Shown: in pieces, positions 16,768-63,944 of the stretch
How positions within the stretch are numbered: the stretch's first letter is position 1
Layout of the letters: every line of letters begins with the position of its first letter
Assembly (NCBI GenBank): GCA_030704615.1
Contig: CM060731.1
Location: 25,234,001 to 25,298,000, forward strand
DNA length: 64,000 nucleotides
From: Takakia lepidozioides
Taxonomy: Eukaryota; Plantae; Bryophyta
Direction of reading: 5' to 3'
Notes under the pieces: generated by a model
Databases searched by the model: none
Seen by the model: only the letters and a program-made list of their open reading frames with translations
Told to the model about the DNA's origin: nothing
Position numbers and translations under genes: made by a program

Positions 16768-17364
16768 TGAATTGATTTTGTAGGGCCAATCATATTGCAC
16801 TAGCTTTCCATATTGGACGGTTTCTGGATTGTATTTGGGTAGCTATGGAATATGTAATGAAGTGGATGGAGGCTCTGGATTGTACGCGAATCAATACGAC
16901 GTCAATGAGTTACATTTTGAAATATTGACCAAGACGATGATGGGTGTAGGGTCTAATTAGGAAACAAAATCATTTGGAACACTATGGGCCTATAAATTAC
17001 AATGGTGCATTTCCAATTTGGTTTATGGTCAGGAACAGTCTTACTTATTGAACGAGAGTTACTATACTCACAAAAGAGACATTGAAGAGTCAGCCGCCAT
17101 GGCCCTACGCACAAAATAGACCTACGTCACAAAATAGAGACATGCTTGGACAAAGGGAAAGAGACCCCATATGGGACTCAACCTTATTTTTAAGCTGCTC
17201 TTACCAGGGTGGCAGGGTATGGTGGGGTTCATAGCCCTAGTCATACTCGAACAGACAGATTATTAAACGTAATAGCTATGTAAGTGGTACCTGCGGGGGC
17301 GGGTCTTTGACCCTTAGGTTGATGACCGGGTTGATACTCGAGAAAAATACGATACATTGGACAT

Positions 17365-18963
17365 TGCCAACAACTTCATTTTTGATATATTCCTCATCCA
17401 ACTCGAAATTCTTCAGATAAAGTCGTGCCAACAGAATGCCTTTGTAATAGGTTGTGAACGATACACAACCCACAGCAACATAGCAATATCAATGTTAAAC
17501 ACACAGGAATGTCCCCGCACTGAATAGCACAATCCACAATCCATAACTAGTTTAGAAGCACGCCACCAATGCCATCACTTTCCATAAGCTAATTGTAAGC
17601 AAAGAGGTCAGCTACAGTGTTGGACTGGTATCACGAAAATATGATACCAGACTGGTCCTGTTATCCCAAGGGCCCACATTTCCCAGTATTGGTATGATCC
17701 TGGTATTATTTGGGGGTAAAGGGGCCGGGTAGGGATAAGAGGGGTATCAATAGCGTAAAATTGTGGATGTATACCAGTAGGGTATCAATATTTGTTTTTT
17801 CCATCTCATATGGGGGGATATGAATATTAGTATATTCAAGAAAATATTCAATAACCTGAGAACCTCACTGGCTAGTTGCCTGCTCATGCTGTGCTCACAT
17901 GATACCAACCCCCTCCCAGCAAGCCCCTGGAATCCTAGGGGGTAACAAACCCACACAAGACCCCAAATTATTAAAAAAAATCAAGAATGCCTTACAAGCT
18001 CAGGAGTGCTTTCAGAGAAGCTATTCAGAAAAAACCTATGAGATATATATCAAAGACATGTTCTAGCACAAACACTTGCGTCTCCTAAAGTCCCAAGGGG
18101 CACATTTGTATGATTATATTTCTCCATGCACACAAGTAGGATAACTTTGGAAGATACAAATTGTATAATTAACCAGTAGTTAGGTGTATTGTACTTGTTC
18201 TTGTCTTGGGTTTGCCGGATGTTGGTAGTTGGTGAGCATCAGCCCTTTTTTCCTTTATGCCTAGGCGTGGATGTGGCGAATTGTTTTTGGGATTAAGTGC
18301 AAAGCTGACAGTACAATGTCCACTTGGATCCTACCTGGCTGGTCTGCAATATAGTGTGCAATATGGCGATTTCTTCACCTAGGGACATAGGGACATGGGA
18401 CATCCGTGCATGGGCCCGCTGCCTGGCTCACACGTGAGCCTTAAACTCCCAATTATTCAATAATGAGAAGCTTAATTTATAGAGAAAAACATTTGTTTTT
18501 GTATTTGGTTTGGGTTGGAGTTTGGCTCGGGATTAGGTTTGGCGTCATGTATTTTTCCAGCGAACCACCTGTCGCTGCAGGGTCTGAGGGTGGGGGAGTT
18601 GGAGGAGTTGGCTGGCGGCAGTTAGCAAAAGAGAGTTAGCAGGAGAGAGGCATAGCCAAGAGAGAGGGCCTACCACAACTATGCAACGTAAGGGACTGCT
18701 ATCCAACGGTGCTACAATGAAGATGATGGTGTAAAGGGTCTCCAACAACTATATATTTATTCATTTCTGTATACATGGATGTTATGTGACGTAGGTTATA
18801 AGTAGGTGTTCATTCGAGGTGATTTTTCTGCTTCAAATTACTTCCACGATGCACTTTGGTCTGCTCGATTTCGACGTTCCATGGCTATGGATTGATATAA
18901 AGAAACTCCTGGCCGGCGTTTGTAATTCACCTGGAACCGTTTCAAGGATGCCTTGACGAAGGT
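17365..18963 (-). pseudogene. RPL5: Decayed genomic (intron-containing) copy of 60S ribosomal protein L5
   Basis: Exon-2-like TFVKASLKRFQVNYKRRPG (18906-18963), exon-3-like [17 protein letters not shown] followed by GTATCT (~18153-18210), exon-5-like YYKGILLARLYLKNFELDEEYIKNEV (~17370-17450). Flanking intron sequence also resembles the RPL5 intron. Confidence 0.85.
17615..17800 (+). mobile_element. Left end of hAT-type element (same family as 45112-60204) inside the RPL5 pseudogene
   Basis: CAGTGTTGGACTGGTATC followed by GGTAT/ATACC subterminal motifs; partner end not found. Confidence 0.55.
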
Positions 18964-34419: not shown

Positions 34420-34850
34420 CAGCACAAGCCTGGCAGCCCTGGAAAAAGGCAAAGAGGTGCATGGTTGCATCGCCAAAGCTGGAACTGTACCAGGTGTGAT
34501 CCTGAACACTGCCCTGGTGGACATGTATGCCAAATGTGGGAGCATTGAGGATGCAGGGGAGTGTTCAACAATATGGCTGAATGAGATTTGTTGTCGAGGA
34601 TATGCACAGCAGGGCGTGGGATGGAGGACTTGGAGACCTATGAGCAAATGTTGGGGGAGGGGGTGAAGCGCGACCACATCGCGTTTGTCTGCGTTTGTAG
34701 TGCGTGTGCAAGCCTGGCAGCCCTAGAAAAGGGCAAAGAGATGCATGGTTGCATTGCCAAAGCTGGAATTGTACAGATGTGATTCTGAACAATACCCTCG
34801 TGGACATGTATGCCAAATGTGGGAGCATTGAGGATGCGGAGGGAGTATTC
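34420..34850 (+). pseudogene. PLS-class PPR fragment
   Basis: SLAALEKGKEVHGCIAKAG..VILNTALVDMYAKCGSIEDA, repeated twice with frameshifts. Confidence 0.85.
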
Positions 34851-35208
34851 ACTGCCACCGTCAGCTCCCAAATACATTGAAATGTTGTACACAAATTTTG
34901 ACTCAACATGGGCCAAACACCATAATATACCTTGATACCCCATTTAATAGGTTATTTTCATGTATTGATGGAAGGAACAATATTTATTTTCTTCTATTTT
35001 TCGTCTTGCATGCTTTCACCTTTCTTCATATTTCTTCTTGCATGCAAATGAGATTTTTGACCCCAGTTAGTTTGTTTGCTAACCACTTTCTTCTCTCTCT
35101 CGCACACCCACAAATTACAACACTAAATACTTCTGCAAAAACTTGCGATGACGACACCGTCACCTCCTATCCATAAAGGCAGTACAATTTTGCAGTCGAG
35201 TTCTACCT

Positions 35209-35589
35209 TCATTTCTGGGACGCGTCGGTATCTCTTCTCTGTTTTGGACCCTCCATCATTTTTGGTTGTCCCCTCTCTACCACAGTTCCTCTCCCTCCTC
35301 TTCCCTCTTCCCCAACTCCACTTTCAGCTTTTTCACCATCATCAAGATCATCGCGCTTGTCGTTGTTGTATGGTAGGAGTTTGTTTCGTTTGCTTCTTCC
35401 AGAATCCAAAGAATGTGTTTTCCTTTTACTAGTCTCATGATCTTGAAGGTCGTTCAAAACTGCAGGAAGGGCACTTGTGGCAGAACAGTTCGACTTCGAC
35501 TTGACCCGTCCAAGCAAGTAGCCCACCAATAGTGCAGTACCTCCAATTGCAACTGATTGGAAGTCCAGCATCGCGGAATGAAAGTCCAT
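35209..35589 (-). other. Gene-fragment-like ORF with N-terminal hydrophobic segment, unknown origin
   Basis: MDFHSAMLDFQSVAIGGTALLVGYLLGRVKSK followed by a charged tail; lies within the interrupted piggyBac. Confidence 0.3.
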
Positions 35590-36537
35590 ACTTAAATCAC
35601 TAGACCTCTCCGTCTCTCCACGATTGTGATCTACAACCACTCCAACCAAGCACATACAGTTACACACTCGTCTTCACACACCAAGGCCTTCTTCCCTATT
35701 TGATTTCATGCTGAAATTCTGAACCCAACAATCAGTTACGATAGTTGCCAGGAGCCCCCACACCCTTTCTCTTAAAAATTTATTAAGAAACACTTGGGCA
35801 AAGTTGGCCATAAATGGAAACCCTCAGAGAGGAATGCACGAAATTTTGGGTTGAGATAATCTATCATTGGACTTAGCTCCACCCTTCTGTAATTTTGGTG
35901 TCATGCACAAATAGCCACCTCCACTTGTCAGCATAGTAGATGTGGCGGATTTGCTTAAAATACTTCATTGGGCGAACAGTATTCAATTGCAGTTAGGAGT
36001 GTTACTTCCCTCACCCAGATGTCCCTTTGTAAAGGCTTTTCAGAACAAAATTCATAGCAACAAAAGAAAACAAAAACCATCAACAAATCCTTCCATGATA
36101 CTAGCTTGGCAAGGGATAAATACATCTGAAACAGGTGATGGTGCGTGAAGCTTGAGTCACCTGAAACAACAAGCTGGCAAGCTTCATCTTTTGTCTGCTT
36201 GTACCAGATCAAGGCACCCAGGCTGCAACAATTATAGAGAAATGGATACCCTACATGGATAGCATGAATATGGTACAACAGTATCTCAGAAAATTGCAGT
36301 CCAAATCAAGTCAAAAGCACCAAATTGGTCTATGGGGAGGTTGTTTAAGCAGACTCCCAAGTGCATGAAAGCATCAATAGTAAGGTATTTGTCCGGGTTA
36401 TACAAGTTACGACTGATTTGCCTCATGTCATCTACAAACAACAACATTTCTCTAATCTATCATGCTTAGGATTGGACTTGTCTTAACAAAATGTAGAATT
36501 GTCAACCAAATGAAGATATTGCATGATGGCCTCAAAC

Positions 36538-36937
36538 CATGGTGACATCATCAAAGCTGGAATTGTACCAAATGTCATTCTGGACACTGCCTTGGTTCAC
36601 TTGTATGCGAAATGTGACTGCAATGAGGATGCAAAGGGAGTATTTGACAATATGGCTGAATGAAATGTGGTGTCGTGGAATGCGATGATCGCAGGATATG
36701 CCCAGCATGGTTGTCATAGGGAGGTCCAACAACTATTTGAATGAATGTAAAAGAAAGGCTTGAAGCTAGACAGTATCACCTTTATATGTGTTCTCTCTGC
36801 CTGCAGCCACACTGACCTACTGAATGAAGGAAGATGCTACTTCGATTCCCTGAGTGAAGATCATGGTATCAATCTGACAGTAAAGCACTTTGGCTGCATG
36901 GTGGACCTTCTTGGACGTGCGGGACAACTGGATGAGG
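36538..36937 (+). pseudogene. PLS-class PPR fragment (C-terminal repeats)
   Basis: HGDIIKAGIVPNVILDTALVHLYAKC..NVVSWNAMIAGYAQHG..TFICVLSACSH..HFGCMVDLLGRAGQLDEA, with stops. Confidence 0.88.
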
Positions 36938-44287: not shown

Positions 44288-45111
44288 ATGGGCATGAAGG
44301 CAGATGCTAGGAGGAAGGCAATGGATCGATTTAGAGAGGGTAAGAATTTCATTCAAGAAATTGTTACTATTAGCGTGGGAGGAGTTTTGTGTTTCTTGTT
44401 GTGTTTGTTTAAGGACCTTACGAAAGTGCTCAATGACTTCAGACTTTTTCTTCATGCAAACGATCGTACATGTATGACAAAAATGGATGTCTTCCTGCGT
44501 CGATACTGTGAAGCCGGTATTTGTTCTTTGGAAAGAGGTGGGAGTCTTCTACATTTGCATTTGCAAATGGTATGCAAATTGTTTGTGAAAAGTCTGGTGA
44601 CACTCAATAAATTCATCAAAATTGAATTGGGGTGGGATAATCCAAAAATTGCTCCACCTGACAATTATGTCCATTGTAAACTCTTGAAACACACAGGCTT
44701 GCATACGTATACTGGAATGGTTGGGTACTGTTTGAAAGATAAAGATGAACCCGACTTTGAGTTTGTTCATAGCAATGTTACGAGTGATGAGATGAACCAG
44801 GGTATGGAGGAATATATCAAGTTTGGTGCTAGTGTTGCCAAGAATCGTGTGTGTTTGACACATCAAAACCTTGTACATCGAGCACATATGTGGTGTAAAT
44901 ACAAGATGCAGAGTGTTCTATCTTCCACGTTGCCAAAAGTTCTGTTTGATAAGATGAAATCTGGACAGTTTTATCCTATTGCGAACTGAGTGGTTTCTTT
45001 TCATAACAGGGGAATGGATTTAGAAAGATCAGCCTCTATATGGAAATGCATGGTTGCCTCTCATCAGTTACAAATGGTGGATGTGGCAAGGATCGTTTTT
45101 GATGTTTCAAC
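44288..45111 (+). pseudogene. Replitron-type HUH endonuclease, 5' part (continues at 60213-60453 after nested insertions)
   Basis: ERGGSLLHLHLQ (HUH motif), GLHTYTGMVGYCLKD (catalytic Tyr motif), SGQFYP; no helicase domain; in-frame TGA at 44987. Confidence 0.8.
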
Positions 45112-45320: not shown

Positions 45321-45721
45321 GCCTCTCATTTTACAATAATTGGGACGTTATAGCGTACGCGCGAGCTGACTGGTGGGCCCCGCGCACGGACGCCCGGCTC
45401 CCCCCACCCGCCGCTGCGCGCGGTCGCCCACCTGCTGCCGCGGCCCCACCAGCCGCGCCCGCGGCAGCCCTGCCCGTGCTCCGCCGCGCCCCCAGTCTGG
45501 CACGGCCAGTCCGCCCGCCAGTCCGCTGCCCGTGAGTCTAGTTCCCCTCAGTCCGCCAAACCGCCAGTCTGTTGTGCACGCCAGTCCGCTGCCAGTCCCC
45601 GCAAGTCCACCCAACAGTCCGCTGTGCCCGTCTGCTGCCCCCCAGTCTGCCAGTCTGCCAGTCCGTGCCGGCCGAAGGATCTGGATCGTCCATTCTGCGA
45701 AACCCATCCGCGCCATCCATG
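45321..45721 (+). repeat. MULE-2 left TIR
   Basis: Inverted near-copy of 59192-59615. Confidence 0.92.
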
Positions 45722-46008
45722 CCAGTCCGCTGTGCCAGTCCCGACTAGTCCACCCAACAGTCTGCCCGCCAGTCCACCGCCCATGAGTCTGCTTTCCTCC
45801 AGTCCACTGATGATGCCGCATCTGGACCGTCCGTTCGCAAATGCCATCTGAGCCCTCCATTTTTAGGGCATGAATTCTAAGCCGCCTACCACTTGCCAGC
45901 AGCCGCGAACGTGCGCACTGATGCTCCTTGCACGTTGTCCATCATGTCCAGTGTACTGCGGCGCGTTTCTTGCAGGTTCTGAAGCGCGTCCTCTGTACTA
46001 TACAGGGC

Positions 46009-49000
46009 ATGGACGTGGAAGTAGAAGGTGATGATATACTAAAAACGAGATGCTGGATTATACGGCCTCTTCGACAAAGTTTGCAAACACCCAAACCAGG
46101 ACCCTTCAACATGAATGACCTCCAATGGAAGAGAGACACGCAATATGGTTATATGGGTGCCAGACAGAATGTTCTGAAGGCCTGCATACCATAGGATAGA
46201 GTTGATGACTTTCTCCTTGGAGAGGAGAGTTTGGTGGACTACCCCACTCAGTTTTGGGTGAATGTCCATACTAAAGTGCAACCCGGCATGCTAAAAGAGC
46301 CGAGAGCCAGCAGTTCTCTGAATAGTATCATGTGTGCTCCATCCTCATCGTCCTTTTGTAGTCTGATTGCATGTCTGTTGCCATTTTTTGTACCCACATT
46401 TTGTGATTTCATGCTTCCAGAAGTCGATGGATATCCATTGTGATTTTTATGTCCAGATATCAATGCTGCTACGGTCCAGATGACAAGTGCACCAACAATG
46501 CGATAGTGGAGGATCCCAAACTGAAACGTGGAGGACCTCTTGTGGGTGCTGGAACATCTCACATTCATAAATGCCCAAGGAGAAAGAAGTTGGAATATGG
46601 AGAGTCTTACAAGCGTGGTTGCCAGTGCTGTTTCAAGGTCCAGCAATGCTATCTCGCCCCCGATATTTGTGTCTTCACATACTACAACAATATGGAGCAT
46701 ACAGACGCGAAATGGAACGCCTGTCATGGGAAGTCCGTTGAGTTCAGGAACACTCGCCACGCCTATGTACCACACATTAGCGAGAAATTGAAAGCATGGG
46801 TCATGGAGTGTCTGTGCTGAGGCCTGTCAGTCGCCCAAATCATGATGGAACATAAAGAGCACGTCATGAACAACACCGGGTTGGGGGATGCATGGACATG
46901 GGACGATTTTTTGCTGGAGCAGGATGTGCGCAACCTGGCCGAGAAATGGGCGTAGCAAACGTTCAAAAAACATGCCAACGATGCGGAGAGTGTCCGCATG
47001 TGGAAAGACCAGAACCCGAAATCGGTCTTCTTCTATCAAGAGGAGAAATTGGCGCCAACATTCAAGCACTACGATGGCGACTTAACATTCACAATCGGCA
47101 TACAGACTGAGTGGCAGAAGAAGCGAATGCTTCAATTAGGCCATGCCTGTATCGTTGCATGCGATGCAACCTTTGGGACAAATCACCACAAGGTACTTTT
47201 CATCCCTTTCAGACATTCTGCATTTGAACAGTTCCCATTGTACACGTTGATGGTCTTCGACGAGTGGCTTAACGGTATACCAATTGCGTACATCATATGC
47301 GCCCGTGAGCAGATAACAGACCTGGTGCCGTGGATGGCAGCCTTGCGAGACTCTCTCCTCGCAGAAATGCCGGACTGGCGACCCAATGCCTTCATTGTGG
47401 ACGATGCCGATGCCAAAATAAACGCCATTACGTAAGTTTCACGTACCCTCCTGTACACTCGCGTGCAAGTCCGTCGTCTACGTCCATTGTTTGTCTCTTC
47501 GGCAAGTCCCCTGCCATACAACGTCTGCTCCGACCTCAGTCTGGTCCAGCAAGTCCGCTGGCAGGCAGGTCCGCTGCAAGACTCACGTGCGCGAGTCTGC
47601 TGCGACCTCAGTCTGGTCGAGCAAGTCCGCTCACAGGCGAGTCCGCCGGAGGGGACTGTTCGCAAGCAGTCCGCTGCAAGACACACGTGCAAGAGTCTGC
47701 TGCGACCTCAGTCTCGTCGAGCAAGTCCGCTCGCAGGCGAGTCCGCCGGAGGGGACTATTCGCAAGCAGTCCGCTGCAAGACATGTGCGCAAGTCTGCTG
47801 CGACCTCAGTCTGGTCGAGCAAGTCCGCTCGCAGGCGAGTCCGGTGTCGTGAGGGCAACACTCATGGTAGGTCAGAGTGGGCGAGTCTTCTGCCTGAATC
47901 CGTTTGGAACAGACAGGCAGACCAGTCAACTAGACAGTCTACTGGGTTAGTGCCCAAGTCCATCGGCGAAGTCCTCTTTGAAGTCTCTCATGTGGGCATG
48001 TGTACTTTGCATGGCTGTTTTTCGAGGAGTGCTCATTTTCATGTGCCTTTGGCATGTCCGGCGGGCTTGGGTGAAGCAATCATGCGCGAAAACCAAAGAT
48101 CCTATCATTGCCGCAAATTTGCTGAAAGATATGGGAGACCTCATGTACTATAGAGGTGGACCAATCAATCCCAAAGAAGGTCTTGCATGGGTAGCAACAA
48201 CACTCCGACACATGAGAAAGAAATATCCGAATGGGCATGAATTTCTGGACTACATCGATAAGGAATGGCGTCCTAAAATAGCAATGTGGTGTACAACAGC
48301 TCGCCATGTTCCGCATGCCAGTCAAGACACCAATGCTAGCATTGAGGCATACCATGGAAACTTGAAGGCAAGACTGAGGATGGGGAAAGCCAAAATGACT
48401 GGGCGTAGAGTGGATTGGCTCATATGGGAACTCACAGGCCGTGTGCTAACATACTACTGGTATGCAATTCACCTGAAGATGCACGGATTCATAAGGAATG
48501 ACAAACAGGAGAAGTACATGTCCAGTTCTGTGCTTGCGGCACGCGATATCCCAGCTTGCAATGTCAATCTTCCATTCCATCCTGGGCAACCAGCCTATGT
48601 TCTAAGCACCAATCACCCAAACACAATTTACATTGTTTACAACCCCGGATGCGAATGGGCTTCTTGCACTTGCCCATGGGCAATGAAGGGCAATTTGTGC
48701 AAGCATCAAGTCCGAGTCCTGAAGTTGCTTCATCCACACGTGCAGGATGGACTCATAGTGCGCGCTTGTGGCACGGCGCTGGGAACCATTCATGGAGGAT
48801 TGCATAATGTGTTTAGGATTCATGCAAGTATCGGCGACGAAGAGGGTTTGGGAAATGCAACAGAGGGCCCTTCCACAGATGACTTCCCCTATGATGCGGA
48901 GCCTGTCCTCGTACCATCCTCCATAGATGAAGAATTTGCAGACATACTTCGCATTGTTGGGGACGACAAATACCTGCAGAAACATGTTTTGTCTTTTCAT

Positions 49001-49261
49001 CGTATCTGTAGGGGGCAACTTGTTGATATTCTCGCCAAGAGTGCTGCAGTAATGCTGCACCTTGCGGCATCAAAGAGCTTCCATCCTGTAAATGACAACA
49101 ACAATATGTCGCTGAAAAGGAAACGAGATTTCGTTGAGGCATGGAAAACGCGACCCAGGGTCTTACGCAAAACAGGGAAGAGGGTTGGTGCCCCAACACC
49201 TGCAGCACACATATACTCCACAATCCGGAGAGTCGCAAACCGTATACCAGATTTAAAGTAG
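46009..49261 (+). pseudogene. MULE/SWIM transposase of MULE-2 (premature stops)
   Basis: KRGCQCCF, GIQTEWQ, ACDATFGTN, FDEWLNGIPIAYII, FIVDDADAKI, CLWHVRRAW, DTNASIEAYHG, SWIM CTCPWAMKGNLCKH; stops at ~46194, 46820 and 46935; intron positions match the MULE-1 transposase. Confidence 0.92.
47523..47845 (+). repeat. ~100-bp AGTC-rich tandem array inside transposase intron
   Basis: GTCTGCTGCGACCTCAGTCTGGTCGAGCAAGTCCGCT starts at ~47523, 47595, 47695 and 47793. Confidence 0.9.
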
Positions 49262-49373
49262 AGTAGGAAATGTAAGAAATGGTACAGTATCATTCTCCCC
49301 ATGAAATAAAATTTCAGCGGTACGATTGCATGTGTACCAGACGTCCAACCTGCCTGCCAACCAGCCTGGTAAA

Positions 49374-49501
49374 CCAGTCTTCTGGCGTCTGAACCAGTCT
49401 GCTCAATCAGTCTTCTACCGTCTGATCCAGTCTGCTCAACCAGTCTTCTGGTGTCTGAACCAGTCTGCTCAACCACTCTTCTGGTATCTGAACCAGTCTG
49501 C
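49374..49501 (+). repeat. 33-bp tandem repeat x4 (CCAGTCTTCTGGCGTCTGAACCAGTCTGCTCAA), with CAGTCT-rich sequence continuing to ~49920
   Basis: Direct reading of the sequence. Confidence 0.9.
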
Positions 49502-50247
49502 CGTACCAGGCTGGGACTCAGTCTTCAAACAGTCTGCTGTGCCAACCTTCTCTTGAGCAGACCAGTCTCCCGGTTCTGAACGTGCCTGCACTTGGCTGAC
49601 CAGTGAGCCTCATGTGGTCTGCTCATCAGACTGGCCATTCTCAGCACGGTGGACTCTCATTACTCTGCTGACTAGACTTGGCAGTCTACTGGCCAATGCC
49701 ATCCGCCTGTCCTATACCACTCTGGCGACTCTCGACAGTCTACTCACCAGTGCAGACTCATGGTTCCCAATCGCATCTGCCAGTCTGCCGGACTGGTCCC
49801 AACTCCTCAGTCTGTCGGACTCTCGTCAGTCTGGCGACATTGCCATCTGTCTGCTCACAAGCCTAGGCATACCCTCTTCCCGTACTCTGGCAGTCTGCTG
49901 ACTCTTGGCTGTTTGCTGACCAGTGGACTCCATTGGTATGTTAAACAAAATGATTGTGTGTGCAGAGGTAAGTCCGCTTAACCACATGCAGTGAATTGGT
50001 CACAAATCTACAGCGACTACTCCACACTGCACTCATATGTGACCAATAGGATGTGTATACAAAGTCATATTTTATTTCGTTGTAAATGCTCAAAAGCATG
50101 CTTTCAATACACATAAATTGAACATAAATCTGAAATCACAGAGGTGGAAGACGGCAGGGCACAACCTGTACGGCGTCATTGGAAAGAAGCGACTGGGCAT
50201 ACTGCTCCCCTGCTTGAATGTCAGTATGTCTGTGCTGCTCAGAGCGG

Positions 50248-50865
50248 TTAGTCTGGTGCTCTGCTCGCCGCTATGGTCAGTTTGCTGTCGAGTCTGGTGG
50301 ACACTCTCGTGTGCGGGGGGAACGGCATGTTGGCCCTTAGTCTAACATGAACAGGGCTAATCTGTCTTTCCACATCATCCTCAGGGGGGCTACGTTCTTC
50401 CACAAAGTCTTCGTCTTCGGAGTCGACACTCTCCACCTGCATGTTCACCTGCAAACTATAAGAGTATAGCCTTGTCCAAAATGTAACGTGTTGCATAAAA
50501 CAGGGAATCTCCAAATTGACCGTGCTAGTTTCCATACAGTAGTCCACCGTACATGTACAGTGGAGGGCCGTTCAACATTACCATTCTAAGGGCTTCATCC
50601 TAAGTTATGTCTGCAAGAAGTGAGGCGAGAGATGCACGTTACTCACCATGGGATAACCCAACAGTGGATCCCGGTCGTTGGCAAGCAAATGCAATTTGGC
50701 AGTTTCCACGAATTGGAGTCGACCTCCATGGCAGTCGTTGCAGGGACACTTTATCTTTGAAATACCCAGTCTAGTTGCACGTCGTTCCTCGATTTGCCAA
50801 AGTCCTGCGTCAGTGTGGGGCACCGCAGTGCGGCGCCGGGTGTTTCTAGTTCCGGCCTCTCTCAT
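50248..50865 (-). CDS. Small spliced gene with CACTA-type transposase-associated domain
   Basis: KIKCPCNDCHGGRLQFVETAKLHLLANDRDP matches the CPCxxC...HL pattern of Pfam Transpos_assoc; donor GTGAGT at ~50646; acidic downstream exon. Confidence 0.6.
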
Positions 50866-51091
50866 CCCCCACGAAACGCTTCTGGGTTTGGCTAGTTTTT
50901 GAAGTGGGAAGTCAGCGAGTGCTCGGATGTGGGGAACCTACGTTTGTGCTTGCAGGCGTTGGAGTATTCGTATGGCGGGTCCACCTCCCCTCTGTTTCCT
51001 ACATGCGCTCCTTCTGTTGTTTGATCAGTAGATCATGGTAGTCTTGTTTGAGGTCGATTACTGCGATTTGAGCGACGAGGAGGAACCCGCC

Positions 51092-54000
51092 ATGGCACGG
51101 ACATGCAAGGCCTCTACACCCGACACCCCTCCACGCACTGCCTACGAGGAAGAGCGAGAGAGGCGCATAGCGGCCAACAAAGAGACGTTGGCTCAGCTGA
51201 ACATTGGGAGCGTTGCGCGCAGGTGAGCAGATCACCCTTGTCCTTAGTATGCATGCTACACAGGTAGTGAGTAGGGGTTTCCCACCACATTAGCCTACTG
51301 TTTTTCCCTCCCATAGGTTTCATGGTGATGGCACTTTCACGATCGCCTTTTGTTTAGGGCAAGATTCACACAGGGTTTTGGAAATGTGTGCGCAACATAG
51401 CTAGGAGTGTACAACGGCCGACTAGGAGCTCCAAAGTTGTGTGGAACGGGCCTCCTCGACGAAGTGGGCGCTTGAAAGAACTAGCATTACCTTCGATGGC
51501 GGAGGAAGAGCCCGAGACTCCCCAGTCGGTGGGCTCTGAGGCAGAGGAACTCGACGAGCGTGATCAGGAGCTCGATGAGGATTACAACATAGATGACGAC
51601 GACGATTCGGAGGAGGAAATGCACGAGGACATAGAGGAGGACGAGGATGGAGATGATGTGGACAAGGTATCAGATTTGGAGAACTACATCAGTGGTGCAT
51701 GTGGACTGACCGAGCCTCCCAATGCAACGCATGCTCCGAGGGCACCAAAACGGCCAGCTCCTCTTCCACGAGAGGTAAGTGGGCATTTGCTGTACTGATT
51801 TCTTAGGTTTGTGGCAGGATTTGCATCTTCTTATTTGTTGTTCCTTTTGGTCCCAGCAGTTTTTTCCATTTTCCACTAGCAGGATGAAGCACCACTTTCT
51901 TGCCCTCTATACCTCATGATACAAGGGTTTATCTACTGTCTATTCCTTGGAACCCAAATCTGTTATTGAAGTCTTCTATACATTTTTCCATTTTGTGCCA
52001 TGAGAAATGCAACTCTGCAGATTGCTGACTCCCTCACAGGAGGTTCAAACTTGTGATGGCCTGTCTTAATACCCAAAAAGCGCAAAGGGGGTTGTGGGAG
52101 GGAGGGACCTGCACATGTAGGGGGCTGCATATTGTGGTGTCATGTTGCAACAAGAAAGAAATTGTAGTGGGAGAGGAGGAACCCCCAGGAGCACGATGGT
52201 AACCGCCTCATCAGCCAGCCATGTCCGAGAGGGGGCGCTCACGACTCTTCCTCCCCCATCTTCCTGCCCCCTCTATTGTCAAATGTTGATAATATGTGAA
52301 GCCATTATCAGCCATTATCATATTGTACTCTCATTGATATGTACGATGGTCATCGGGGCCAGATTGTGCCTACAAGGGATTCCCCAAAGAACCCCGAAAG
52401 AGGGTCGAAACATACAAGGAGGACTTTCCCAGTGACGTTTGGCGTGTTCAATGGATCAGACCTAAATGCATTTTGGGTGCGATTTCTGCTGCATTCGGTG
52501 TATGTATATTATAGAGCGCGTTTTTTGTTGATGTATCCTACATGATGTTCATGCTTTATCTTCCTACATAACTTTTTCCCACATGTTGATTTGCAGGATC
52601 CAGTGAGAAAGAAGAAGGGAGTTGCTCCGGCAGGTGTCTTCAACCATCCATCCCCACGTCTTCAACCAACCCCGGATGGAGGAGGCCCTCCCTCCTTTCC
52701 ACGTAACACTGGTGCGTTTTATCCCCTTGGCATTCAGAGGTATGCACAGTATGAACAATAGACTGCTCATGTTCCAGCCGCCCCTGAAATTCACCCGCCC
52801 TTTTCTCAGTCGTACCATGCAAACAACCCGTCAGGGGAGAACCGGTCATGTGCAGTTCCGTGTGGGGCATTTCCGCAAACTGGGGAAGCACAACATGCTC
52901 CTGTTCAGCATGGGCACTACCACGAAGGTGTGTGGTACCCTCACCCCATCCCTCCCCCACCTGCGCATCCTCCCCAGGCAACGTATCCCAGAAGCCCCAT
53001 GTATAGTGCGCCGTTGCATGGCCCTTATTCCAGGCAGCCCATAGCTTCACCCAATTGCAACGCTTCGCGGCCTCTTCAATTCCCAAGCTCACCAGCTCCG
53101 AGCACAGGTTATGTTCCTGCCCACCCCACACCCCACGTTGGTGCGTGGCAGGGTTCATGTCCGCCCGAAGGGCCCCATGTTGCAGGTTGTGAGGGAGGAG
53201 AGGAGGCCCGTGATTCCAATATGACTCCAGATGCGCAACATTTGACTGGCAAGGACAGAGCCAATTTTTTGCGCAAGGCGAGGAGAGTAGCACGGAGAGG
53301 GTTGAAGGAAACGTCTTGTGCAAATGTAGCTGCTGGGCAAAAGAGATTCATAGTTGCGTGTGGCAAAAAGGGCCCATGCGGGGATGCACGAATGACTGGC
53401 TGGCAGCCCTGCGAGGGCAATGCCAACGTGTGCTGGACTGTTCTGTGCCCATCCATCTTCAACCTCAAAGTCTGATTGACGAGGTGGGTGAACTATTAGC
53501 AGATGATTGGGAATATTTACCTCCTGGGATAACTGGCGCCCAACTTCGAACTGAGATTGGAGGCGTCATTAAATACCAGCGCATCAAACTGTTTAGAAAA
53601 GTGTACTCCCGTGGCAAACCTAAGCCCCACTATGTTGCGGACAAGACTTGGGCAGAACTTGTGAGGCATTGGAACACGCCCGAATGGCAAAAGAGTCGTG
53701 ATAATGGCAAGCATGCACGGGGGCATATTGGTGCCCCTTCGAGATCTGGACGCAGTGGCCTTAGCGGCGTTGAGGAACGTCTGGTAAATCTGCCTGTCTC
53801 ATGACATTGCCAATATATTCAGGTAGTGAGGTGTCTTGTCATTTGTATCTTACTCTTAGAGGATGGCACTAATATTCCCATATCCTGTCCATGTGTAGGC
53901 TAAGACAAGTGGTCGTCCTCCACTTCTATCCGAAATTTCGGGGAGCAAGAATAGCAAAGGGGTATGGTTCTGATTCAGCAGGGGCCACCCGATCTGTAAG

Positions 54001-55354
54001 TAACTAACCCACCTGCATTTTTTGCAATGATGTGCTTGTCAATTATTTATGGTTTTGCCTTCATGTGTTGTTGTCCAATAAATTACCTCGCATGGCTAGT
54101 GCGATAGATGTATTGAATCGTATTTGCACTCTTTTTGTGGCAGGGCCTTGGAGCATTGGCTTCTCGGCTTGATGGCTTGGAAGGATGGAAACATACAATG
54201 GAGGCCAGCTCAATGGAGCACAAATTGGAATTGCAGGTAGTGAAATCCATGTTTGCCACTGCAGTATCTAAGACAGACAAGTTCAACATGGCATTGGCAG
54301 CGAAGCTCGGTTTGGACCTGCCGAGGGATGAATCTCCATCAACATCAAACATTGTGTGTGAGTTGTCGCTCCCTGTTCATGGTGTTTTCCCACCTGCGAC
54401 TACTGTGGAAATGACAAGTACAGGTGAGCAGCCTCCTAGCAGTGGAGGCAGTGGACAAAGGAAAGGGGGCAGTATTGTGGAAGAAGATGCCACAGGTGAG
54501 GACAAAGTTCAGAACATGGCATGTGACGATCCTTGCCTTAATTATGGTGCCAATGATGACCTATCCCCCCTTATTGAGAAGGGAGTGCCTGTACTGGAGG
54601 ATCACACCGGCAGTGAACTTAGACAGAGTGCCCAAGACATAGGGGCAGGGGCTAAGGGCACAGGAGTGGTTATTGTTGGGGCAGGGAAGAACATTGATTC
54701 AACAACAAAATTGCCCGTTGTACGGAAGGTAAGTACTCGTGTTCCTATATTCTTGTGCTGTTCCAAGTCGATTATGCAATACCTGCAGGCCGTTCATGAC
54801 TTCTGTGTACATGTGTGGGTTTCTATTGATTCAGAAGCCACCAAAGGAAATTGTTGCGGTGAATATGAGGAAGAAGTCCACAAGACTTGCTGCCAGCAAC
54901 GTTGATGGGAGCCGTATGGGAAGCTTCAAAGCGTCGGCACCTATTGTAAGTTTTCCTTCGTGGAAGTACATCCGTATTTTGTTTGTAGGGCTATATGATG
55001 GCATCTCGCGTTTTCCCTGTCCATAACTGTTGCATGTGCATAACAAATGACAAGGGCACACATTGGTGGTGTTGGCTGTCCCAGTTTCAGGTTGGTGACA
55101 AGGTCACAATGTTTGACCCCAATGCACCCAAACGGAAGGCAGGTGTGGGCCATATATTGGGCATGTCGACTGACTGGCTGGCTTATGTCGTTCATGCCGA
55201 TTATCATGTTGTCTCGGTTGAATCAGTACATGGGGCAGATGTTGCTCTACCATACCCCAACAATGATGTTAGGCCTCCCATTGTGATGCTCAGTGACACT
55301 GTAGGCAGCACGGCCCTGTGGTCTGCCAAGTTCCTCAAACTGACCCAAACATGA
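51092..55354 (+). pseudogene. CACTA TnpA-like gene (Ptta/En/Spm Transposase_24-like core and Tnp1/En/Spm-like C-terminal domain), multi-exon, frameshifted
   Basis: YEEERERRIAANKETLAQLNI N-terminus, acidic and Pro-rich tracts, KPHYVADKTWAELVRHWNTPEWQKSRDNGKHAR..GRSG, C-terminal VSVESVHGADVALPYPN..LSDTVGSTALW. Confidence 0.7.
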
Positions 55355-55929
55355 GGTTGTGGGGGATCCTCAATTTGAAGGCAATTTTGACTGAACGCCA
55401 CTTCATATCGATTTCACCTTTTTTTCGTTATTGTGCGCATCAATGTAGGATTTGGGTACATTGTGGGGTTGTGATCAGCAGTGCAGACTCTGCAATACTT
55501 GCATGTTCAGACTAAACTTTATTTGGGCAATGAAGGGCGCACCCAACTTTGAAGCACCCTTGCATTTGGTCATTCTTTCTGTTGTTCTGGCCATGCTTAG
55601 TCAATTGTACATGTCATGAGCAGGTTGTTGCCGCAGTGCTTTGGAATTGTGTTTATGTATATGAGTCATATTTCACATGGACTGTGAAACTGACAGTGTG
55701 GACAGTATCACGATTTGTGATATGATCATGATGCCTATGGAATAATTGTGTACACCATGACGTCACAAATATGTGAAATCAACCGTAGCTTGCCTGTGGC
55801 ATCTTCCACATTTTTGTGGAATGACCTACAACATCAGCAGTAGAATATTTCAGACCCACTATGATATGCTCCTGTGGCTATGTGGAATGACCTACAGTAT
55901 AGGCAGTAAAATACTACACACCCACTCCA

Positions 55930-56400
55930 TGCAGATTACGCCACGTGCCGTCCTCTCCAGAATACACGCGTTGCCCATACCGTTGCCCACATGTCGTCAA
56001 GCCCAGGTAACAGGGTGTCGCATCATTTTCCCATAGGTGTGGACAAGTCCACACCCTTTGTACGTTTAGGATCCACGTGGCGGTGTTTGCCACGGAACAC
56101 GTGGCCCCCAAACTTGCTGAAGCTGTGAAAACAGCCAGTGGATGGTCTCACACCGAATGGCTTTTTTCATACCCACATGCCACGCCAGATGTCCGCTCCA
56201 CATAAGTGCACATCGCCTCTTTGTCTCCATACACGTGTCATCCCCACAAAAATACACGTGTTGCACACACCGTTGCCCAGATGTCGTGAAACCCTGGTGA
56301 CAGGCAGTCGCATGGTTTTCCCGTAGGTGTGGACAAGTCCACACCTTTGTACATCTACAATCCACGTGGCGGTGTTCGCCAAAGCACACGTTGCTCGTGG
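55930..56400 (+). repeat. ~300-bp direct duplication rich in CCAC/CGTG
   Basis: CCGTTGCCCA.ATGTCGT...TAGGTGTGGACAAGTCCACAC...ATCCACGTGGCGGTGTT occurs twice. Confidence 0.75.
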
Positions 56401-56502
56401 AAAAAGCCATGAACCCCGTGAAAAAGGCCACCCGTGGACTTTTCCACAGGGCCACCCGAGAGCCAGGCCGTCCACGGGGTGTCCGAAAGCACTCGTCGTT
56501 TC

Positions 56503-57207
56503 TTACACCCACGGCAGGTGTGGCCTGGGGCGGATTCCACAGAAAAAAGTGTGAAAAAAACCGTGGAAAAAGCCATTTTTTCTTCTAGTGGTCTGCGTCT
56601 GCTGCGTAGACCGTCTCCCTGACACAACCCGTGACACTTCCCGACTGCCTTGGGGACGAGTCTGCTGTTGAGATTTCGCCCTCGCCTCCCGAGCAGACCT
56701 TGTAGCCTTTTCTTTTTTTTTCTTCTGGGCCCCATCACTAAGTTTCCTTTTTCTGGGAGCCACAGGCGATGGCGATGTCAGGTCATGCACATCTTGCATT
56801 GAAATATCCGAACCCACCCCATACCGTGCGCGCACCTCCGCCAAAGTGCGGGCCTTTGGGTTTGCGCCACGGAGTCTGGCGGTGGCCGCATTCACCACCC
56901 TCATTGAACTTTGAACTGGCCACGGCTTGAAGCCAGGTGGGATATAGCGCTTGTTTTTGCAACCCGTGTCAACACAATGGCGGTTTAGCTGCACTTTGTC
57001 CTTGATAATTTCACTACAGAAGGGACAGTGGAGCTTATCCTTCTGCCAGTTGGAGTCTGCAGGCTTGATTGCGCGGAGGTCTAAGAATGCTTCAACTATT
57101 TTCGCATCATACTCCTCAGGTGAGTACCAGTACCTTCGCTCCTTTATCTTGGACTTGTGCATGAAATGCAACCAGTCTGCTCCACCCTTTGCACAAACAT
57201 CCTCCAT
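56503..57207 (-). CDS. MULE-2 accessory C2HC zinc-finger protein with basic NLS-like tail (open ORF)
   Basis: CPFCSEIIKDKVQLNRHCVDTGC; PRKRK..KKKKEK; homologous to MULE-1 14340-14617. Confidence 0.7.
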   Translation of the reverse strand: MEDVCAKGGADWLHFMHKSKIKERRYWYSPEEYDAKIVEAFLDLRAIKPADSNWQKDKLHCPFCSEIIKDKVQLNRHCVDTGCKNKRYIPPGFKPWPVQSSMRVVNAATARLRGANPKARTLAEVRARYGVGSDISMQDVHDLTSPSPVAPRKRKLSDGAQKKKKEKATRSAREARAKSQQQTRPQGSREVSRVVSGRRSTQQTQTTRRKNGFFHGFFHTFFCGIRPRPHLPWV

Positions 57208-57569
57208 GGCTGCAGAATCAGATAAGAGCTGCAGCGGCAATGAGCGACAGACAGACTAAGAATAAGAAAGCAGAGAAGAGCGGAAAAGAGAATGGAAAGA
57301 AACCAAAGCACAAAGCACAAAGAGGAAAGCTCACCAGGCAACAGGCGACGGTTGTTGCGACGATTCGGTGCTCACGCGACTGTCCTCGCCTCGAAAACCT
57401 AACACGCACAAAGGACCAATGGGAGGTGGATAGTGCGAAAGAAGTCTAGTGGGAAGTGGACCCTGCATGTGCGGAGTGACGTGGCGAGATTTCACCGGTG
57501 CCCCTTTTTGGCCGCCATCGCATTAATTAGTTGCAGACCCCTCACACGTGCTGGCGGTATGCCACTGCA

Positions 57570-58400
57570 CGGACAGACTCGTATGCCACTGCACTGACAG
57601 TCTAGCAGACGGGATGAGTAGGACTATCGTCAGTCTGCCGTCGTCGCATTCATCAAGTCCAGCAGACTTACTCCTGATGACAAAGACGGCCGAGCAGACC
57701 CAGTACCCTCCACAACAGACTCATATGCCACCGCAAGGACAGACTGACGACTGAGGTTAAGCGGATTGACGAAGAGACTAAGGCGAGTGCGGAGTTTGGT
57801 GCGGAGTCTGATGACATGCCGCGACGTGACTGGGCCTTCTTACTGCCGTCACTACTTTATTGCGTCCAGCAGACTTAAACCTAATGACAAAACAGACCCA
57901 CTGCAAACAAACTTGCGCAACAATAGACTCGTATGCTACTGCACGGATAGTCCAGCAGACGAAAGGTTCAACAGACTGACGAAGAGACTGACGCAGAGTA
58001 ATTTGCGCGACAACAGACTGATTTCTAACAGACTAATATCCCAAAAGACAAAGTATCCCCTAGGCGGCCGGGTGATACGGGAGTAAACCGTAAACCGCGT
58101 CCAGCAGACTTACACGTGATAATAATCACGGCTCAACAGACCCAGCAGACTCACGACAATGTGGATAATTAAAAGGTAGTAGTTAAACGGACTCATATCC
58201 GAAGAGACGGACTTCCAGCTGACCAACGGTTCAACAGACTGACGAGAGAAGAGACTTCGGGGATAAGACGAGAGAAGACACTTTAGAATTCGGCAGGCAG
58301 TGACGGCCCAGTAGTCCAGTGAAGAACAGACTCACGCCACACCAGACTTGTATCATTACAGACCAACAGACCAGCAAACCAGACTGATATCCCATTAGAA
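57570..58400 (-). repeat. CAGACT/GACT-rich degenerate array (AGTC motif on minus strand)
   Basis: Many CAGACT/CAGACC copies; partial repeats such as AGACTCGTATGC.ACTGCAC and GTCCAGCAGACTTA. Confidence 0.7.
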
Positions 58401-59191
58401 CCACGCTTGGCGTCGCCGTCATGCCGTGATTGCATTTCATCCGTCCAATAGACTTGCATATGCCAATACTCATGGCACAACACACTGCTTAGAGAAAGTA
58501 CTGACAAAAACGCAGTCGAAGAGCCTGTTAATCCACGTGCATTTGCAGTCGTAAGGACCTCGAACATCCACAAGCAACGTGAATCCACATCTCTCAGGCT
58601 ACGTCTCCTTTCCCAGTGTCCAGTTTTCAAGGAGACGGTAGTGGTTGAGATGTGATGTTTCAGGAGGTGCATCTAGATGTTTGAGGACCTTCGGACTGGA
58701 TCCTGTTCCGTTCACACTCTCCGCAGTTCCCAGACATGTGGTGGCAGAGACGTCCTCCCCTGAACAGTCTCATCGGTGGACATAAATTCTGCAATGTATA
58801 CATGCCCCCACGTGCATATGCTTCCGTGATTTCCGCTATCGTGTTACCAATGGTTTCCTGCTCCATACGAAGGAGCTCGGACTTGGAGACACACCACAAA
58901 CCATAAACGCATGCAATTTTTCCACATATCGTCCTAAAAAATAAGCACGTCAACACAAAACAAAGGCAAAAATAGTGGAAGCATATGCACGATGGTGGCT
59001 GTAGAGCCCCGCCAGCCCTCTCATGTTCAGGCACACCCTTCATCGTCATTAAAATCGCCATAAACAAGAACAACAGCCGCATGCGTACAAAGTCACCTCC
59101 GCAACATTGGACAACAAAGAGCCGCAAGAAGAGACAACAAGAACGAGTGGGCGAGTTCGTGGCAGGGTGTTACGATCTTCCATGCCCTAAA

Positions 59192-59615
59192 CATGGATGG
59201 CGCGGATGGGTTTCTCAGAATGGACGATCCAGATCCTTTGCCCGGCGTGGACTGACAGACTGGGGGGCAGCAGACGGGCACAGCGGACTGTTGGGTGGAC
59301 TTGTGGGGACTGGCACAATGGACTGGCATGCACAGCAGACTGGCCGGCAGACTGGCAGTTTGGCGGACTGAGGGGAACTGGGACCACGGGCAGCGGACTG
59401 GCGGGCGGACTGGCCGCGCCGGACTTGGGGCGCGGCAAAGCGCGGGCAGGGCTGCCGCAGGCGCGGCTGGTGGGGCCGCAGCTGCAGGTGGGCGACCGCG
59501 CGCAACGGCGGGGGGGGGGGGGTCCGGGTGGGGGGAGCCGGGCGTCCGTGCGCGGGGCCCACCGGTCAGCTCGCGCGTGCGCCATAACGTCCCAATTATT
59601 GTTAAAATGAGAGGC
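59192..59615 (-). repeat. MULE-2 right TIR
   Basis: Inverted copy of 45321-45721. Confidence 0.92.
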
Positions 59616-60453: not shown

Positions 60454-61460
60454 ATTCTGTACAAAGCTACTTGTACAAATTTGTATTTTAATCTTTGTGA
60501 ATACAACATGCCACTTTCGCTTTTCTGGACCAATGGATGATTTTGTATTCCACTTCCCTCCAACATTCATTTTTGCACCATCAAAAGTTAAAAAAAAACA
60601 GCCATATATAAGGGACTTAAGCAATTCCGGTGATGGGTAGGCCATACATATGTAGGGTGGGAAAGTCCAAAATCGCCTCAAATGAGGGGTGGGCCGAACC
60701 TAGGGCGGGTGTTTGATAGGGTTAAGTGGGCATCCATGAAAGCAGGGCCAGGCAGAGCTCCTCCAAAACCCGGTAAACTTGTGATGGGCTATGGCTCCAA
60801 ATATCCTAGGCCTGCAGGCTATAACATAGGTGTGCCATATGAAGTCTTGGGCAAGGAACCTATAAATGCAATGCCATTGTCTGATTGGTCCCAAATTGTC
60901 TTGGGGACTTCATATGGATGCCCATAACACTTCAACCGGAGGGATTACAAATTGAACGGCTGTTTTTTCAAAATTCTAGGAAGAGACATTTTGGCCTGCC
61001 CAAAGAAAAAGGAATAAAAACATACCAGAAAAGACTGAAAATTTCAGAGAATGTATGTTATCAGGTATGGAACATCATTCTTGAGATCACCGTAGTCAGT
61101 GATTTTTTTTTTAACAAAGGGAAATACCTGGGAGCGAATGCTCGCAAATCAGGCCCCTAAATTACAGTGTGACGAAAAAATAACCTCTTTCAGAGTAACC
61201 TTGCCGTGAAGGCTTTTGCATGGGACACCGCCCAAGGCCGCCAAAGGGAAGGGGGAGAAGAACATACCACAACCATCAAGTTAGCAAGATTTGACCCCAA
61301 AATCATGTGGGTGCACTATCCAACTGAACTACTGACTGTTGGTGTGAATTTAAAGGAACTCGACATTTTCTGAAAGAAGTTAAAGTTTTATGGAAATTTT
61401 CAAATATCGGCCGAATATATAAACTTCAGACCTTGTCAACCGTCGATTTCGAGCCCTAAT

Positions 61461-61594: not shown

Positions 61595-63944
61595 ATGGTG
61601 AGTCTTCCTTCTCCTTTTTCGACTTCTGTTTGTGTTTGTGTTTGTGGGGGATAAAGCTGTAGGAAGACTGACTTTTACTATGGCTGGCTAGGCCTTCGTG
61701 AAGCCGAATAAGTCGAAGGCGTACTTCAAGCGGTTTCAGGTCAAATACAAACGCCGACGAGGTTGGTTTTCCCAATTGCTATCCTCGATGGGAATTCGTT
61801 GCTGTAAACCCGCGCCTTCCTTCCATGTTGGCACTCAGATGCATACCTTCCAGTGTCGCCAACTTATAGCCTGTGAATCACAGTGCCTTGGGTAGAATAC
61901 TGATGGCTATTGGGTTCAGGGTAGTTTAAGTTTCATCCTGTTGGGATCTGGGGTTGGAGACTGCAACATTCAAAAGGCTGCACAGTTTTGTGATGCTAGT
62001 CATGCGTGAGTGCCATGCTCGCATCTCAGTTCGTTCGATTGGCATTCCTCTGATGTGCAGCTGGCAAGACTGACTACCGGGCGAGGATTCGCCTAACATC
62101 GCAAGACAAAAATAAGTACAATACTCCTAAGTACCGGTTGGTCGTGAGATTTGTATCCTCAATTTGTGCAGGGAGAATAGCAGGTTTCAAAGCTGAATAA
62201 GAAATGTGTTTCGTGAGATTAGGGCTTATGTGTTCTTGGAATTATGAGCTGCGAAAGTGCATTTAGAATCTGCACAAGTGACTGGACGCGCTGTCTTCTC
62301 ATTGTTATGCAATTATCGTGTAGCTCGGAATGTTTCACTAAATTAGTTTCTTGTAAATCATATCTTCCTTAACGCTGCGCTCATATAGACCAACAAGGAT
62401 ATTGTTGCACAAATCGCGTATGCCACCCTTGCCGGTGACATTGTTCTTACCGCAGCTTACGCGCATGAGCTTCCCCGCTATGGCCTAAAGGTGGGCCTTA
62501 CAAATTATGCTGCAGGTAATTGACCCACCTGATCAGTGTCTGTGTTATGGTAAATCCTTTCTGGTGCCCAGTTGGTAGGTGTGCTTGCAGAGTTGCATTT
62601 CTGGAATCTTGCTATTCAGTGTCATGGTTGCCTTTTTCTCTGGTTGATGTTTGTTGAGCACAAGAGGGGTGTGGGTTGTATGGTGCACAGCCTACTGCAC
62701 AGGCCTTCTCTTGGCACGAAGGCATTTGAAGAATTTCGACCTGGATGAGGAATACATCGGGAATGAAGTGGTTAGTGATGTCTGCTTTACTCCGACATCT
62801 TGGAATGACTGACATTGCCAAAAAACATGTGTACTGGCAAGCATTTTTGGTCCAGGGAACTTAGTATGTGTTGGAATATTTTTTGATACCGAAGAAGGCA
62901 TCCAGCATGATTGCTTCAACTTGATGCTACTGTCTCTGGTGTTGACCTTTGTTGGGACTGGTTTGAGCTGTAGGAGTTAATGAGGACTTTTTGATGGATG
63001 TGATGCATGCAGGCTACTGGCGATGACTATAACGTTGAAGAAGGGGAGGGAAAGCGGCCCTTCAGAGCCCTTCTTGATGTGGGTCTTGTCCGAACTACAA
63101 CTGGCAACAGGGTCTTTGGAGCACTCAAGGTGCGTCAGTTTGTAAGTGAAAGAGATTAGGTCGCTGGTACATTTTTGTGCTGTTTCTGTTGCTGGAGGAC
63201 AGGTGTGAAAGCCAAACTCAGCTCAGTAAAGAACATAGGGTTTAGTGAGAAAACAAGCAAATCTGGTGATAATGTTTCTTGGAACCCATGTAAATGTGCT
63301 GTGGCGTCCTTTAATAGTCAGCTGTGGAATGAAACGTACTTCTGCTTGCACCTTAGTATCTCTCCTGTCAAAACTCACTAATATGTGGAATTTCTTTAAG
63401 CATTTAGAGAATTGCATATAGAGTGTGTCAGTGACTCTTAGAATTTGGGACTTTTACAGGGTGCTCTCGATGGAGGGTTGGACATCCCTCATGGCGAAAA
63501 GAGGTTCCCTGGCTACGGCAAGGAAGATAAGGTTTTGAATGCCGACACCCACCGGAAGTACATCTTGGGTGGTCACATCGGGGATTACATGAAGGTTTGA
63601 ATTTTACGTGTTAATTTTACGAGTATTGGTGTTACAGAGCCAATGATTTGACAGTAAAAAAGTGTGCCACTTACTGCAGTACTGGCATTCCCATGGCACA
63701 GTAGTGTTCAAGCTGTTGTTCTGATTCTTGTCAAATATAACTCTTAATTGTAGTTGTGGTGTGGATCATCACAGCTCCTGAAGGAAGAGGAGCCCGAGAA
63801 ATACCAGGCACAATTTAGCAGTTTCGTGAAGGAAGGTGTGGAGCCCGAGGGGCTTGCAGATCTGTACACCAAAGTGCATGCGGCAATCCGGGCAGACCCA
63901 TCTCTCCAGCACACCGAGAAGAAACCTCCAGCGGAGAAGAAAAC
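61595..63944 (+). CDS. RPL5: 60S ribosomal protein L5 (uL18), 3' end beyond window; exons 61595-61597, 61692-61761, 62061-62152, 62389-62515, 62691-62770, 63013-63129, 63460-63594, 63775-63944
   Basis: [100 protein letters not shown]. Confidence 0.97.
62153..62388 (+). other. U12-type (minor spliceosome) GT-AG intron in RPL5
   Basis: 5' site GTATCCTC; branch point TTCCTTAAC at 62365-62373, about 15 nt before the 3' splice site. Confidence 0.85.

Follow-up and report, generated by a model that had tools for sequence, protein, structure and literature searches.

Described systems and the locus

MuDR has two convergent genes, mudrA and mudrB, between long terminal inverted repeats (TIRs). Two open reading frames (ORFs) are also reported for it in the literature (PMC6446971). 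In the VANDAL elements of Arabidopsis, the motifs at which VANC acts are dense, share one orientation and lie in introns and upstream regions (PMC5735166). For AtMu1, the transposase by itself is enough to bind motifs in the TIRs and to demethylate cognate copies, and TnpA proteins, proven demethylation factors that bind motifs, act on their own termini (both bioRxiv 10.64898/2026.08.24.746577); TnpA-like proteins are apparently restricted to flowering plants, according to a 2026 preprint. The subject here is a Mutator-like element (MULE) at positions 45321-59615 of a window from Takakia lepidozioides (Bryophyta), by which we mean the whole stretch of 64,000 nucleotides that was analyzed (assembly GCA_030704615.1, contig CM060731.1, positions 25,234,001 to 25,298,000). 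We read it, with a probability of roughly 0.65, as a decayed, methylated two-gene moss MULE with a CACTA insertion in its zinc-finger gene. No bryophyte system of this kind was described in the literature searched, which covers few subscription journals.

The element is a MULE by all membership features tested, though decayed: it has a DDE transposase with a SWIM domain, long TIRs and a target site duplication (TSD) within the range of 8-11 bp. The TSD-bounded MULE with a transposase that had been proposed in the preliminary description thus stands, with an exact 9-bp TSD, TIRs of ~400 bp and both MULE and SWIM domains. The TIR alignment has 371 matches and 20 mismatches over 391 columns (95% alike); transitions make up 16 of the mismatches. 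A Pfam search, in which multi-exon gene models were searched one exon at a time, placed the MULE domain PF10551 in one transposase exon (E 1.2e-3) and recovered the SWIM domain PF04434 above the Pfam cut-off (E 5e-4). The transposase is interrupted by in-frame stops at 46192, 46818 and 46953, every one TAG or TGA, and shares 39-47% identity with the transposase of a second MULE in the window. A metagenome scan with the transposase as query returned no match, and Pfam found no credible domain in the ORFs at 58283-59127.

With VANDAL elements (Arabidopsis; PMC5735166, PMC10398659) the MULE shares a 9-bp TSD, an accessory gene and a one-orientation family word that is massed in noncoding DNA, including introns and upstream regions, and amplified through tandem repeats. 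It differs in that it keeps long TIRs whereas those of VANDAL are degenerate, in the length of its word (6 bp as against 9) and in its accessory protein, which combines a C2HC finger and a helical core where VANC has DUF1985 and DUF287. No Pfam match to DUF1985/DUF287 was found in the accessory ORFs or their homologues, and a fold search of PDB gave no match. On the basis of its long TIRs and of the lack of these two domains, the element, as far as its sequence goes, is VANDAL-like in layout and not a VANDAL member. Like AtMu1 and MuDR, it has long TIRs in which motifs cluster; unlike in AtMu1, the word also fills internal noncoding DNA and an accessory gene is present. The MuDR layout of two convergent genes between long TIRs is shared as well, the second gene here having a zinc finger.

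The family word

The word is best expressed as AGTC(C/T)G (AGTCYG; CRGACT on the other strand). In an unbiased k-mer scan the top 4-mer was AGTC/GACT, and AGTC, AGTCTG and AGTCCG led the ranking. An amplified motif had been noted before in both TIRs, a transposase intron, the post-transposase spacer and the region upstream of the zinc-finger gene, and this was borne out: AGTCYG is enriched 10-30x over dinucleotide shuffles in these five noncoding regions, with 13 occurrences against 0.6 expected in the left TIR, 16 against 1.6 in the intron, 14 against 1.3 in the spacer, 18 against 1.2 upstream of the zinc-finger gene and 8 against 0.3 in the right TIR. In the same comparison the MULE flanks are at or below expectation and the second MULE shows no enrichment. 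The word has a marked polarity, lying on the + strand in the left arm (13:0 in the TIR) and on the - strand in the right arm (0:8), so that it points inward across 14 kb. It is embedded in unrelated repeat units, namely a 100-bp array, a 33-bp array and dispersed copies, and most fields persist when both tandem arrays are masked, the intron dropping to 3 in 282 bp.

In run X7, a contig of 1228 nt aligns to 58430-59121 in four pieces, and the summed contig depth is highest at 58901-59100 in three runs. This stretch is common to many family members and is perhaps the promoter or the 5' exons of the zinc-finger gene. The X7 contigs were not used as evidence of expression: the run includes contigs made up of a terminus plus flank, and X7 may therefore be DNA.

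The interrupted zinc-finger gene and a probable nested CACTA remnant

The zinc-finger gene, as read from its sequence, is cut by a CACTA end at codon ~206. Its product is 60% identical over amino acids 1-200 to P0001, the protein of the sole close relative (contig L001, a sister element), and the match stops at codon ~200, where the CACTA end begins. The open frame extends to 56503 solely by read-through of that end, the last 28 codons being CACTA terminus. The complete gene earlier placed at 56503-57207 is thus a truncated one, since the CACTA terminus at 56590 lies inside the ORF. Between the window gene and P0001 the ratio of nonsynonymous to synonymous substitution rates (dN/dS) is 0.28 (bootstrap 0.17-0.42), which indicates purifying selection between members of the zinc-finger family.

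Behind the CACTA terminus lie ~740 bp of subterminal repeats with CACGTGG and GTGGA/TCCAC words and a 117-bp duplicate; a consensus word for this arm, YGTGGMAA, was too sparse for scoring. Beyond them, a Transpos_assoc gene and a Transposase_24 (TnpA-like) gene stand head-to-head. The Transpos_assoc domain is what we take to be the usual N-terminal piece of TnpD, and 50248-51036 is probably the 5' part of a TnpD-like gene; this N-terminal piece was found without any Tnp2 catalytic region, and a homologue search with its exon, limited by length, gave none. The TnpA-like gene has a stop at 52759, and a frame break near 53460 and, compared with the sampled copies, lacks 2 bases at 53956. Its Transposase_24 match is confined to one exon, for which a PDB sequence search gave nothing, and neither Pfam nor Atlas gave a match for its C-terminal exon. 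Both genes have a putative start codon in a CATG palindrome (51034-51037), where the two codons overlap; the true TnpA-like start may be 51095.

The region shares with CACTA/En-Spm elements a terminus, subterminal repeats, a putative Transposase_24 gene and a Transpos_assoc domain, and differs from them in having one end only, no Tnp2 catalytic region, head-to-head genes and a nonflowering host. AGTCYG occurs 72 times in 4392 bp of noncoding MULE DNA as against 2 times in 2883 bp of noncoding CACTA DNA, and once in the 4.3 kb of the TnpA-like gene. Among the alignment rows listed, the divergence of the window copy from X5 contigs is 1.3-1.7% for the CACTA part and 2.9% for the MULE parts (Fisher p 0.002-0.02), in line with a CACTA that arrived after the MULE. 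A 672-nt contig (record 24, run X7) is 87% identical to the window on 56415-56590 and continues with 295 different letters; it leaves the window sequence at 56590, and therefore such a CACTA end exists with another flank. From the CACTA end, the CACTA domains, the separate repeats, the scarcity of AGTCYG and the lower divergence from sampled copies, we infer that 50248-56590 is a one-ended CACTA remnant and not a whole element. Two of the three accessory genes that had been ascribed to the MULE, those with Transpos_assoc and TnpA-like products, probably belong to the nested CACTA. The CACTA's own repeats fit TnpA proteins acting on their own termini, and the TnpA-like protein would act on these subterminal words and not on AGTCYG.

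The far side of the insertion may be marked by a weak trace of the zinc-finger family's CPG block at ~50165-50125 (profile rank 2 of 3042 ORF pieces, E 1.3); a DNA alignment of 50.1-50.4 kb to the relative was not above background.

Decay of the window copy

Every gene of this copy carries lesions. Where transitions separate this copy from the sampled ones with the best support, a C or G was lost in 24 of 25 cases, and 17 of these 24 losses are in a CG or CHG context (p 0.002). By this pattern of decay the window copy looks methylated and, despite its arrays, unprotected. No RNA run was found to hold the stretch.

The zinc-finger family in transposons and moss genomes

Intact zinc-finger relatives are proteins of ~600-900 amino acids with four blocks, a C2HC finger, the CPG block, a coiled coil and a helical core, of which the window copy retains the first. 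The finger follows the pattern C-x2-C-x12-H-x4/5-C, and its profile matches the classical fingers of ZFP57 (E 7e-5) and CTCF (E 8e-4); a metagenome scan with this profile gave no match. A structure model predicts an all-helical core with a long coiled coil (pLDDT 71). For this fold Foldseek gave no match at E<=0.001, the best Z was 4.8 and Atlas gave TM<=0.26; the core has no Pfam, PDB or Atlas match and no VANC domains. The finger itself is poorly modeled (pLDDT 52), and its best Z of 5.2 is meaningless. VANB/KAONASHI-type MULEs carry Ulp1 in the accessory gene, a domain not found here: the core model is all-helical, and Pfam gave no match to Peptidase_C48 in this element, the second MULE, L001 (which ends before the gene does) and the host homologues.

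The sister element shows how the gene continues past the position of the CACTA junction, with a 330-bp intron holding 10 AGTCYG as against 0.6 expected, followed by exons that match the zinc-finger gene of the second MULE. Its coding DNA is 72% identical to that of the window element, and AGTCYG is retained. At ~1700-1900 of L001 the word also occurs within coding DNA, as tandem QQTP-type peptide repeats, which recall the tandem peptide motifs in the variable regions of VANC (PMC5735166). An expectation that the accessory genes would be conserved among copies is borne out for the zinc-finger gene by its dN/dS with P0001; the TnpA-like and Transpos_assoc genes are missing from both the sister element and the second MULE. 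In the latter, the top word is TTCATCC, largely from one tandem array.

A profile search retrieved full-length host homologues in mosses, one gene in Ceratodon purpureus and three paralogues in Physcomitrium patens, besides other public sequences, which agrees with a moss origin of the genome. The host homologues are 53-78% identical to one another and syntenic, with a cullin gene upstream and a phosphoenolpyruvate carboxylase gene downstream; the fetched flanks contain no transposase and no AGTCYG fields. They have the same four blocks as the MULE family, from which they are nevertheless distant, the transposon copies being only 22-31% identical to them and varying in the finger helix. Positions -1 to 6 of this helix read DKVQLNR in the window copy and DKIQLNR in P0001, both from AGTCYG elements, DKxELNL in the second MULE (word TTCATCC), whose finger has a frame break with the residue there read as X, and DKNKLNL in 8 of 8 host-type proteins. 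An engineered helix that reads GAC is DRSNLTR (PMC3607563, Table 2), and GAC is the core of AGTCYG on the other strand. The resemblance of DKVQLNR to this reader is a lead toward a helix-to-word match.

Alternative explanations and the reader of the word

In the history that we favor, the original element would have had a transposase facing a zinc-finger accessory gene; a CACTA would have inserted at codon ~206 of the latter, and its far end, most of TnpD and most of the remaining zinc-finger gene would have been lost later. In intact members, an element-encoded protein would bind the massed, inward-pointing AGTCYG/CRGACT words and, by analogy with VANC, TnpA and the AtMu1 transposase, keep TIRs and promoters open. 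Several points weigh against this account. The window yielded neither a left CACTA end (nor a GTC+CACTA junction) nor a 3-bp TSD for the CACTA, and the nesting is thus read from one end; both CACTA Pfam matches are under curated cut-offs (Transposase_24 with 23.6 bits against 28.7); and none of the listed contigs spans 56590. Contig depth, which is no copy number, is alike over CACTA and MULE parts, at ~900-1050 in X1 (lone divergent contigs, 42-64) and 5.5-9 in X5, both parts being clearly repeated. The divergence and decay tests cover the alignment rows listed. Lastly, the helix-to-word match comes from just two elements, which are related to each other, and the code behind it is loose; a single finger recognizes 3-4 bases, the finger model is the poor one mentioned above, and by our own estimate any triplet has a rough one-in-six chance of occurring in a 6-mer read both ways.

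As to the protein that reads AGTCYG, the zinc-finger protein is the best candidate, at somewhat short of even odds; the transposase is less likely, and a little less likely again is that neither of them does so and that a host factor or a by-product of repeat turnover accounts for the words. The protein-plus-motif system of VANDAL type that had been suggested for this locus survives in its layout, which is real and recurs in the sister element; its multi-protein version falls apart. A more ambitious proposal, that a VANC-like system evolved independently in moss MULEs, in which a C2HC-finger protein with a family-variable helix reads the element's own word and protects the element from silencing, the conserved moss host gene being its source or domesticated form, must be regarded as tentative and rather unlikely as a whole.

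The first alternative makes the transposase the reader, with AGTCYG sites that spread by amplification from the TIRs to the internal spacers and the zinc-finger gene serving another role. The densest and perfectly oriented fields are indeed those of the TIRs, and AtMu1 provides the precedent of a transposase that suffices for binding and demethylation. The fields also lie 2-10 kb inside the element, in introns and upstream of the accessory gene, like VANC sites (PMC5735166), and the finger helix changes with the word whereas host homologues are invariant; we consider this explanation rather unlikely. It is also improbable that the word has no reader at all, the fields being by-products of duplication and slippage or host-factor sites and the zinc-finger gene a captured host cargo under mild constraint. 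The tandem arrays that supply part of the AGTCYG signal, the conserved moss homologue, the methylation of the window copy despite its arrays and the derivation of most TTCATCC words of the second MULE from one tandem array would all be in keeping with this, but the same six bases recur inside unrelated repeat units, they are retained in a relative only 72% identical in coding DNA, and their strand polarity holds over 14 kb.

In the least likely explanation, the MULE captured the CACTA genes and keeps them stably; together with a short zinc-finger gene they would act on the AGTCYG arrays, and the chimera would have spread as a unit. This would account for the even contig depth in X1 and X5 and for the assembly of the TnpA-like region even in a 4-Mb skim (X6), hence repeated, and would agree with the proven role of TnpA proteins (bioRxiv 10.64898/2026.08.24.746577), but is opposed by the CACTA end and repeats that are still present, by TnpA-like introns free of AGTCYG when the zinc-finger intron of the relative abounds in it, by the unequal divergence of the two parts, by the absence of these genes from the sister element and the second MULE and by a junction that cuts the zinc-finger gene. 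Taken separately, a chimera that spread as one unit is improbable, and that its TnpA works on AGTCYG is more improbable still.

Implications

The present analysis adds the nested CACTA, the gene truncation, the conserved moss host homologues and the hint of a helix-to-word match. If the zinc-finger protein does read the word, sequence-specific anti-silencing would have arisen separately in mosses, and the reader would be a classical finger with a readable, changeable code, making protein-word coevolution directly testable. The conserved Physcomitrium homologues offer a knockout route to the function of the family. The window copy, broken and nested, is a poor example of such a system and serves mainly as a caution, since "accessory genes" of TnpA type in giant MULEs here can turn out to be remnants of a CACTA. 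The presence of a TnpA-like gene in a moss-like plant also speaks, if only slightly, against the view that these genes are confined to flowering plants.

Other features of the window

Table 1. Coordinates of the MULE, of the CACTA remnant within it and of related features (window positions unless another locus is named)
Feature	Position or accession	Strand	Basis or remarks
MULE, whole element	45321-59615		Exact 9-bp TSD and TIRs
Left 9-bp TSD TATCAATAA	45312-45320		
Right 9-bp TSD TATCAATAA	59616-59624		
Left TIR, ~400 bp	45321-45721	+	Partial internal duplication runs on to ~45860
Right TIR	59192-59615	-	
MULE transposase	46009-49261	+	Pfam matches; four exons inferred
Inferred transposase exons	~46009-46331, 46455-47193, 47229-47432, 48002-49261	+	
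AGTCYG field, transposase intron	47436-48000	+	Holds 100-bp x2.8 tandem array, 47561-47843
AGTCYG field, post-transposase spacer	49262-50100	+	Holds 33-bp x4.3 array, 49359-49501
AGTCYG field upstream of zinc-finger gene	57541-58450	-	16 on - strand vs 2
Zinc-finger (C2HC) accessory gene, 5' third (~206 codons)	56591-57207	-	Homology to P0001
Uncertain: far side of zinc-finger gene or 3' end of CACTA gene fragment	50120-50400	-	
CACTA terminus CACTAGAAGAAAAA and subterminal repeats	55850-56590	-	Terminus reads inward from 56590
CACTA-derived gene fragment, Transpos_assoc domain	50248-51036	-	PF13963, E 1.3e-3; stops at 51027, 50940
CACTA TnpA-like multi-exon gene	51035-55354	+	PF03004 (Transposase_24), E 6.3e-5
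Second MULE	~3301-15919		Unrelated 270-bp TIRs, decayed transposase
Zinc-finger gene of second MULE	14596-12581	-	Near full-length, broken; tblastn E 1e-21 to 1e-26
TTCATCC tandem field of second MULE	7416-7874		
Ceratodon host homologue	KAG0615240, M758_5G026400		Uncharacterized
Physcomitrium host homologues	LOC112277411, LOC112282765, LOC112293720		Uncharacterized
Host-gene loci	L003 10001-12838, L004 6212-9253, L005 10001-12999		Core without known fold

No exact TSD was found for the second MULE. At 9283-9812 it has a 151-bp tandem array followed by repeats containing TGACGTGTCA, and at ~10890-11230 it contains a fragment resembling pentatricopeptide repeats (PPR); PPR-like repeats at 34425-36710 resemble this fragment in inverted orientation. 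To the left of the first MULE, a + strand ORF of 233 amino acids (44288-44989) has the Replitron HUH endonuclease domain PF21859 (E 3.8e-17) and stops 330 bp short of the element, which may have inserted in the 3' end of a Replitron. An isolated 46-bp end at 18426-18471 is 74% like the MULE terminus and lacks AGTC fields. Inverted, diverged copies of another repeat occupy 17360-18954 and 61716-62782, as well as 16526-16563 and 61317-61354.

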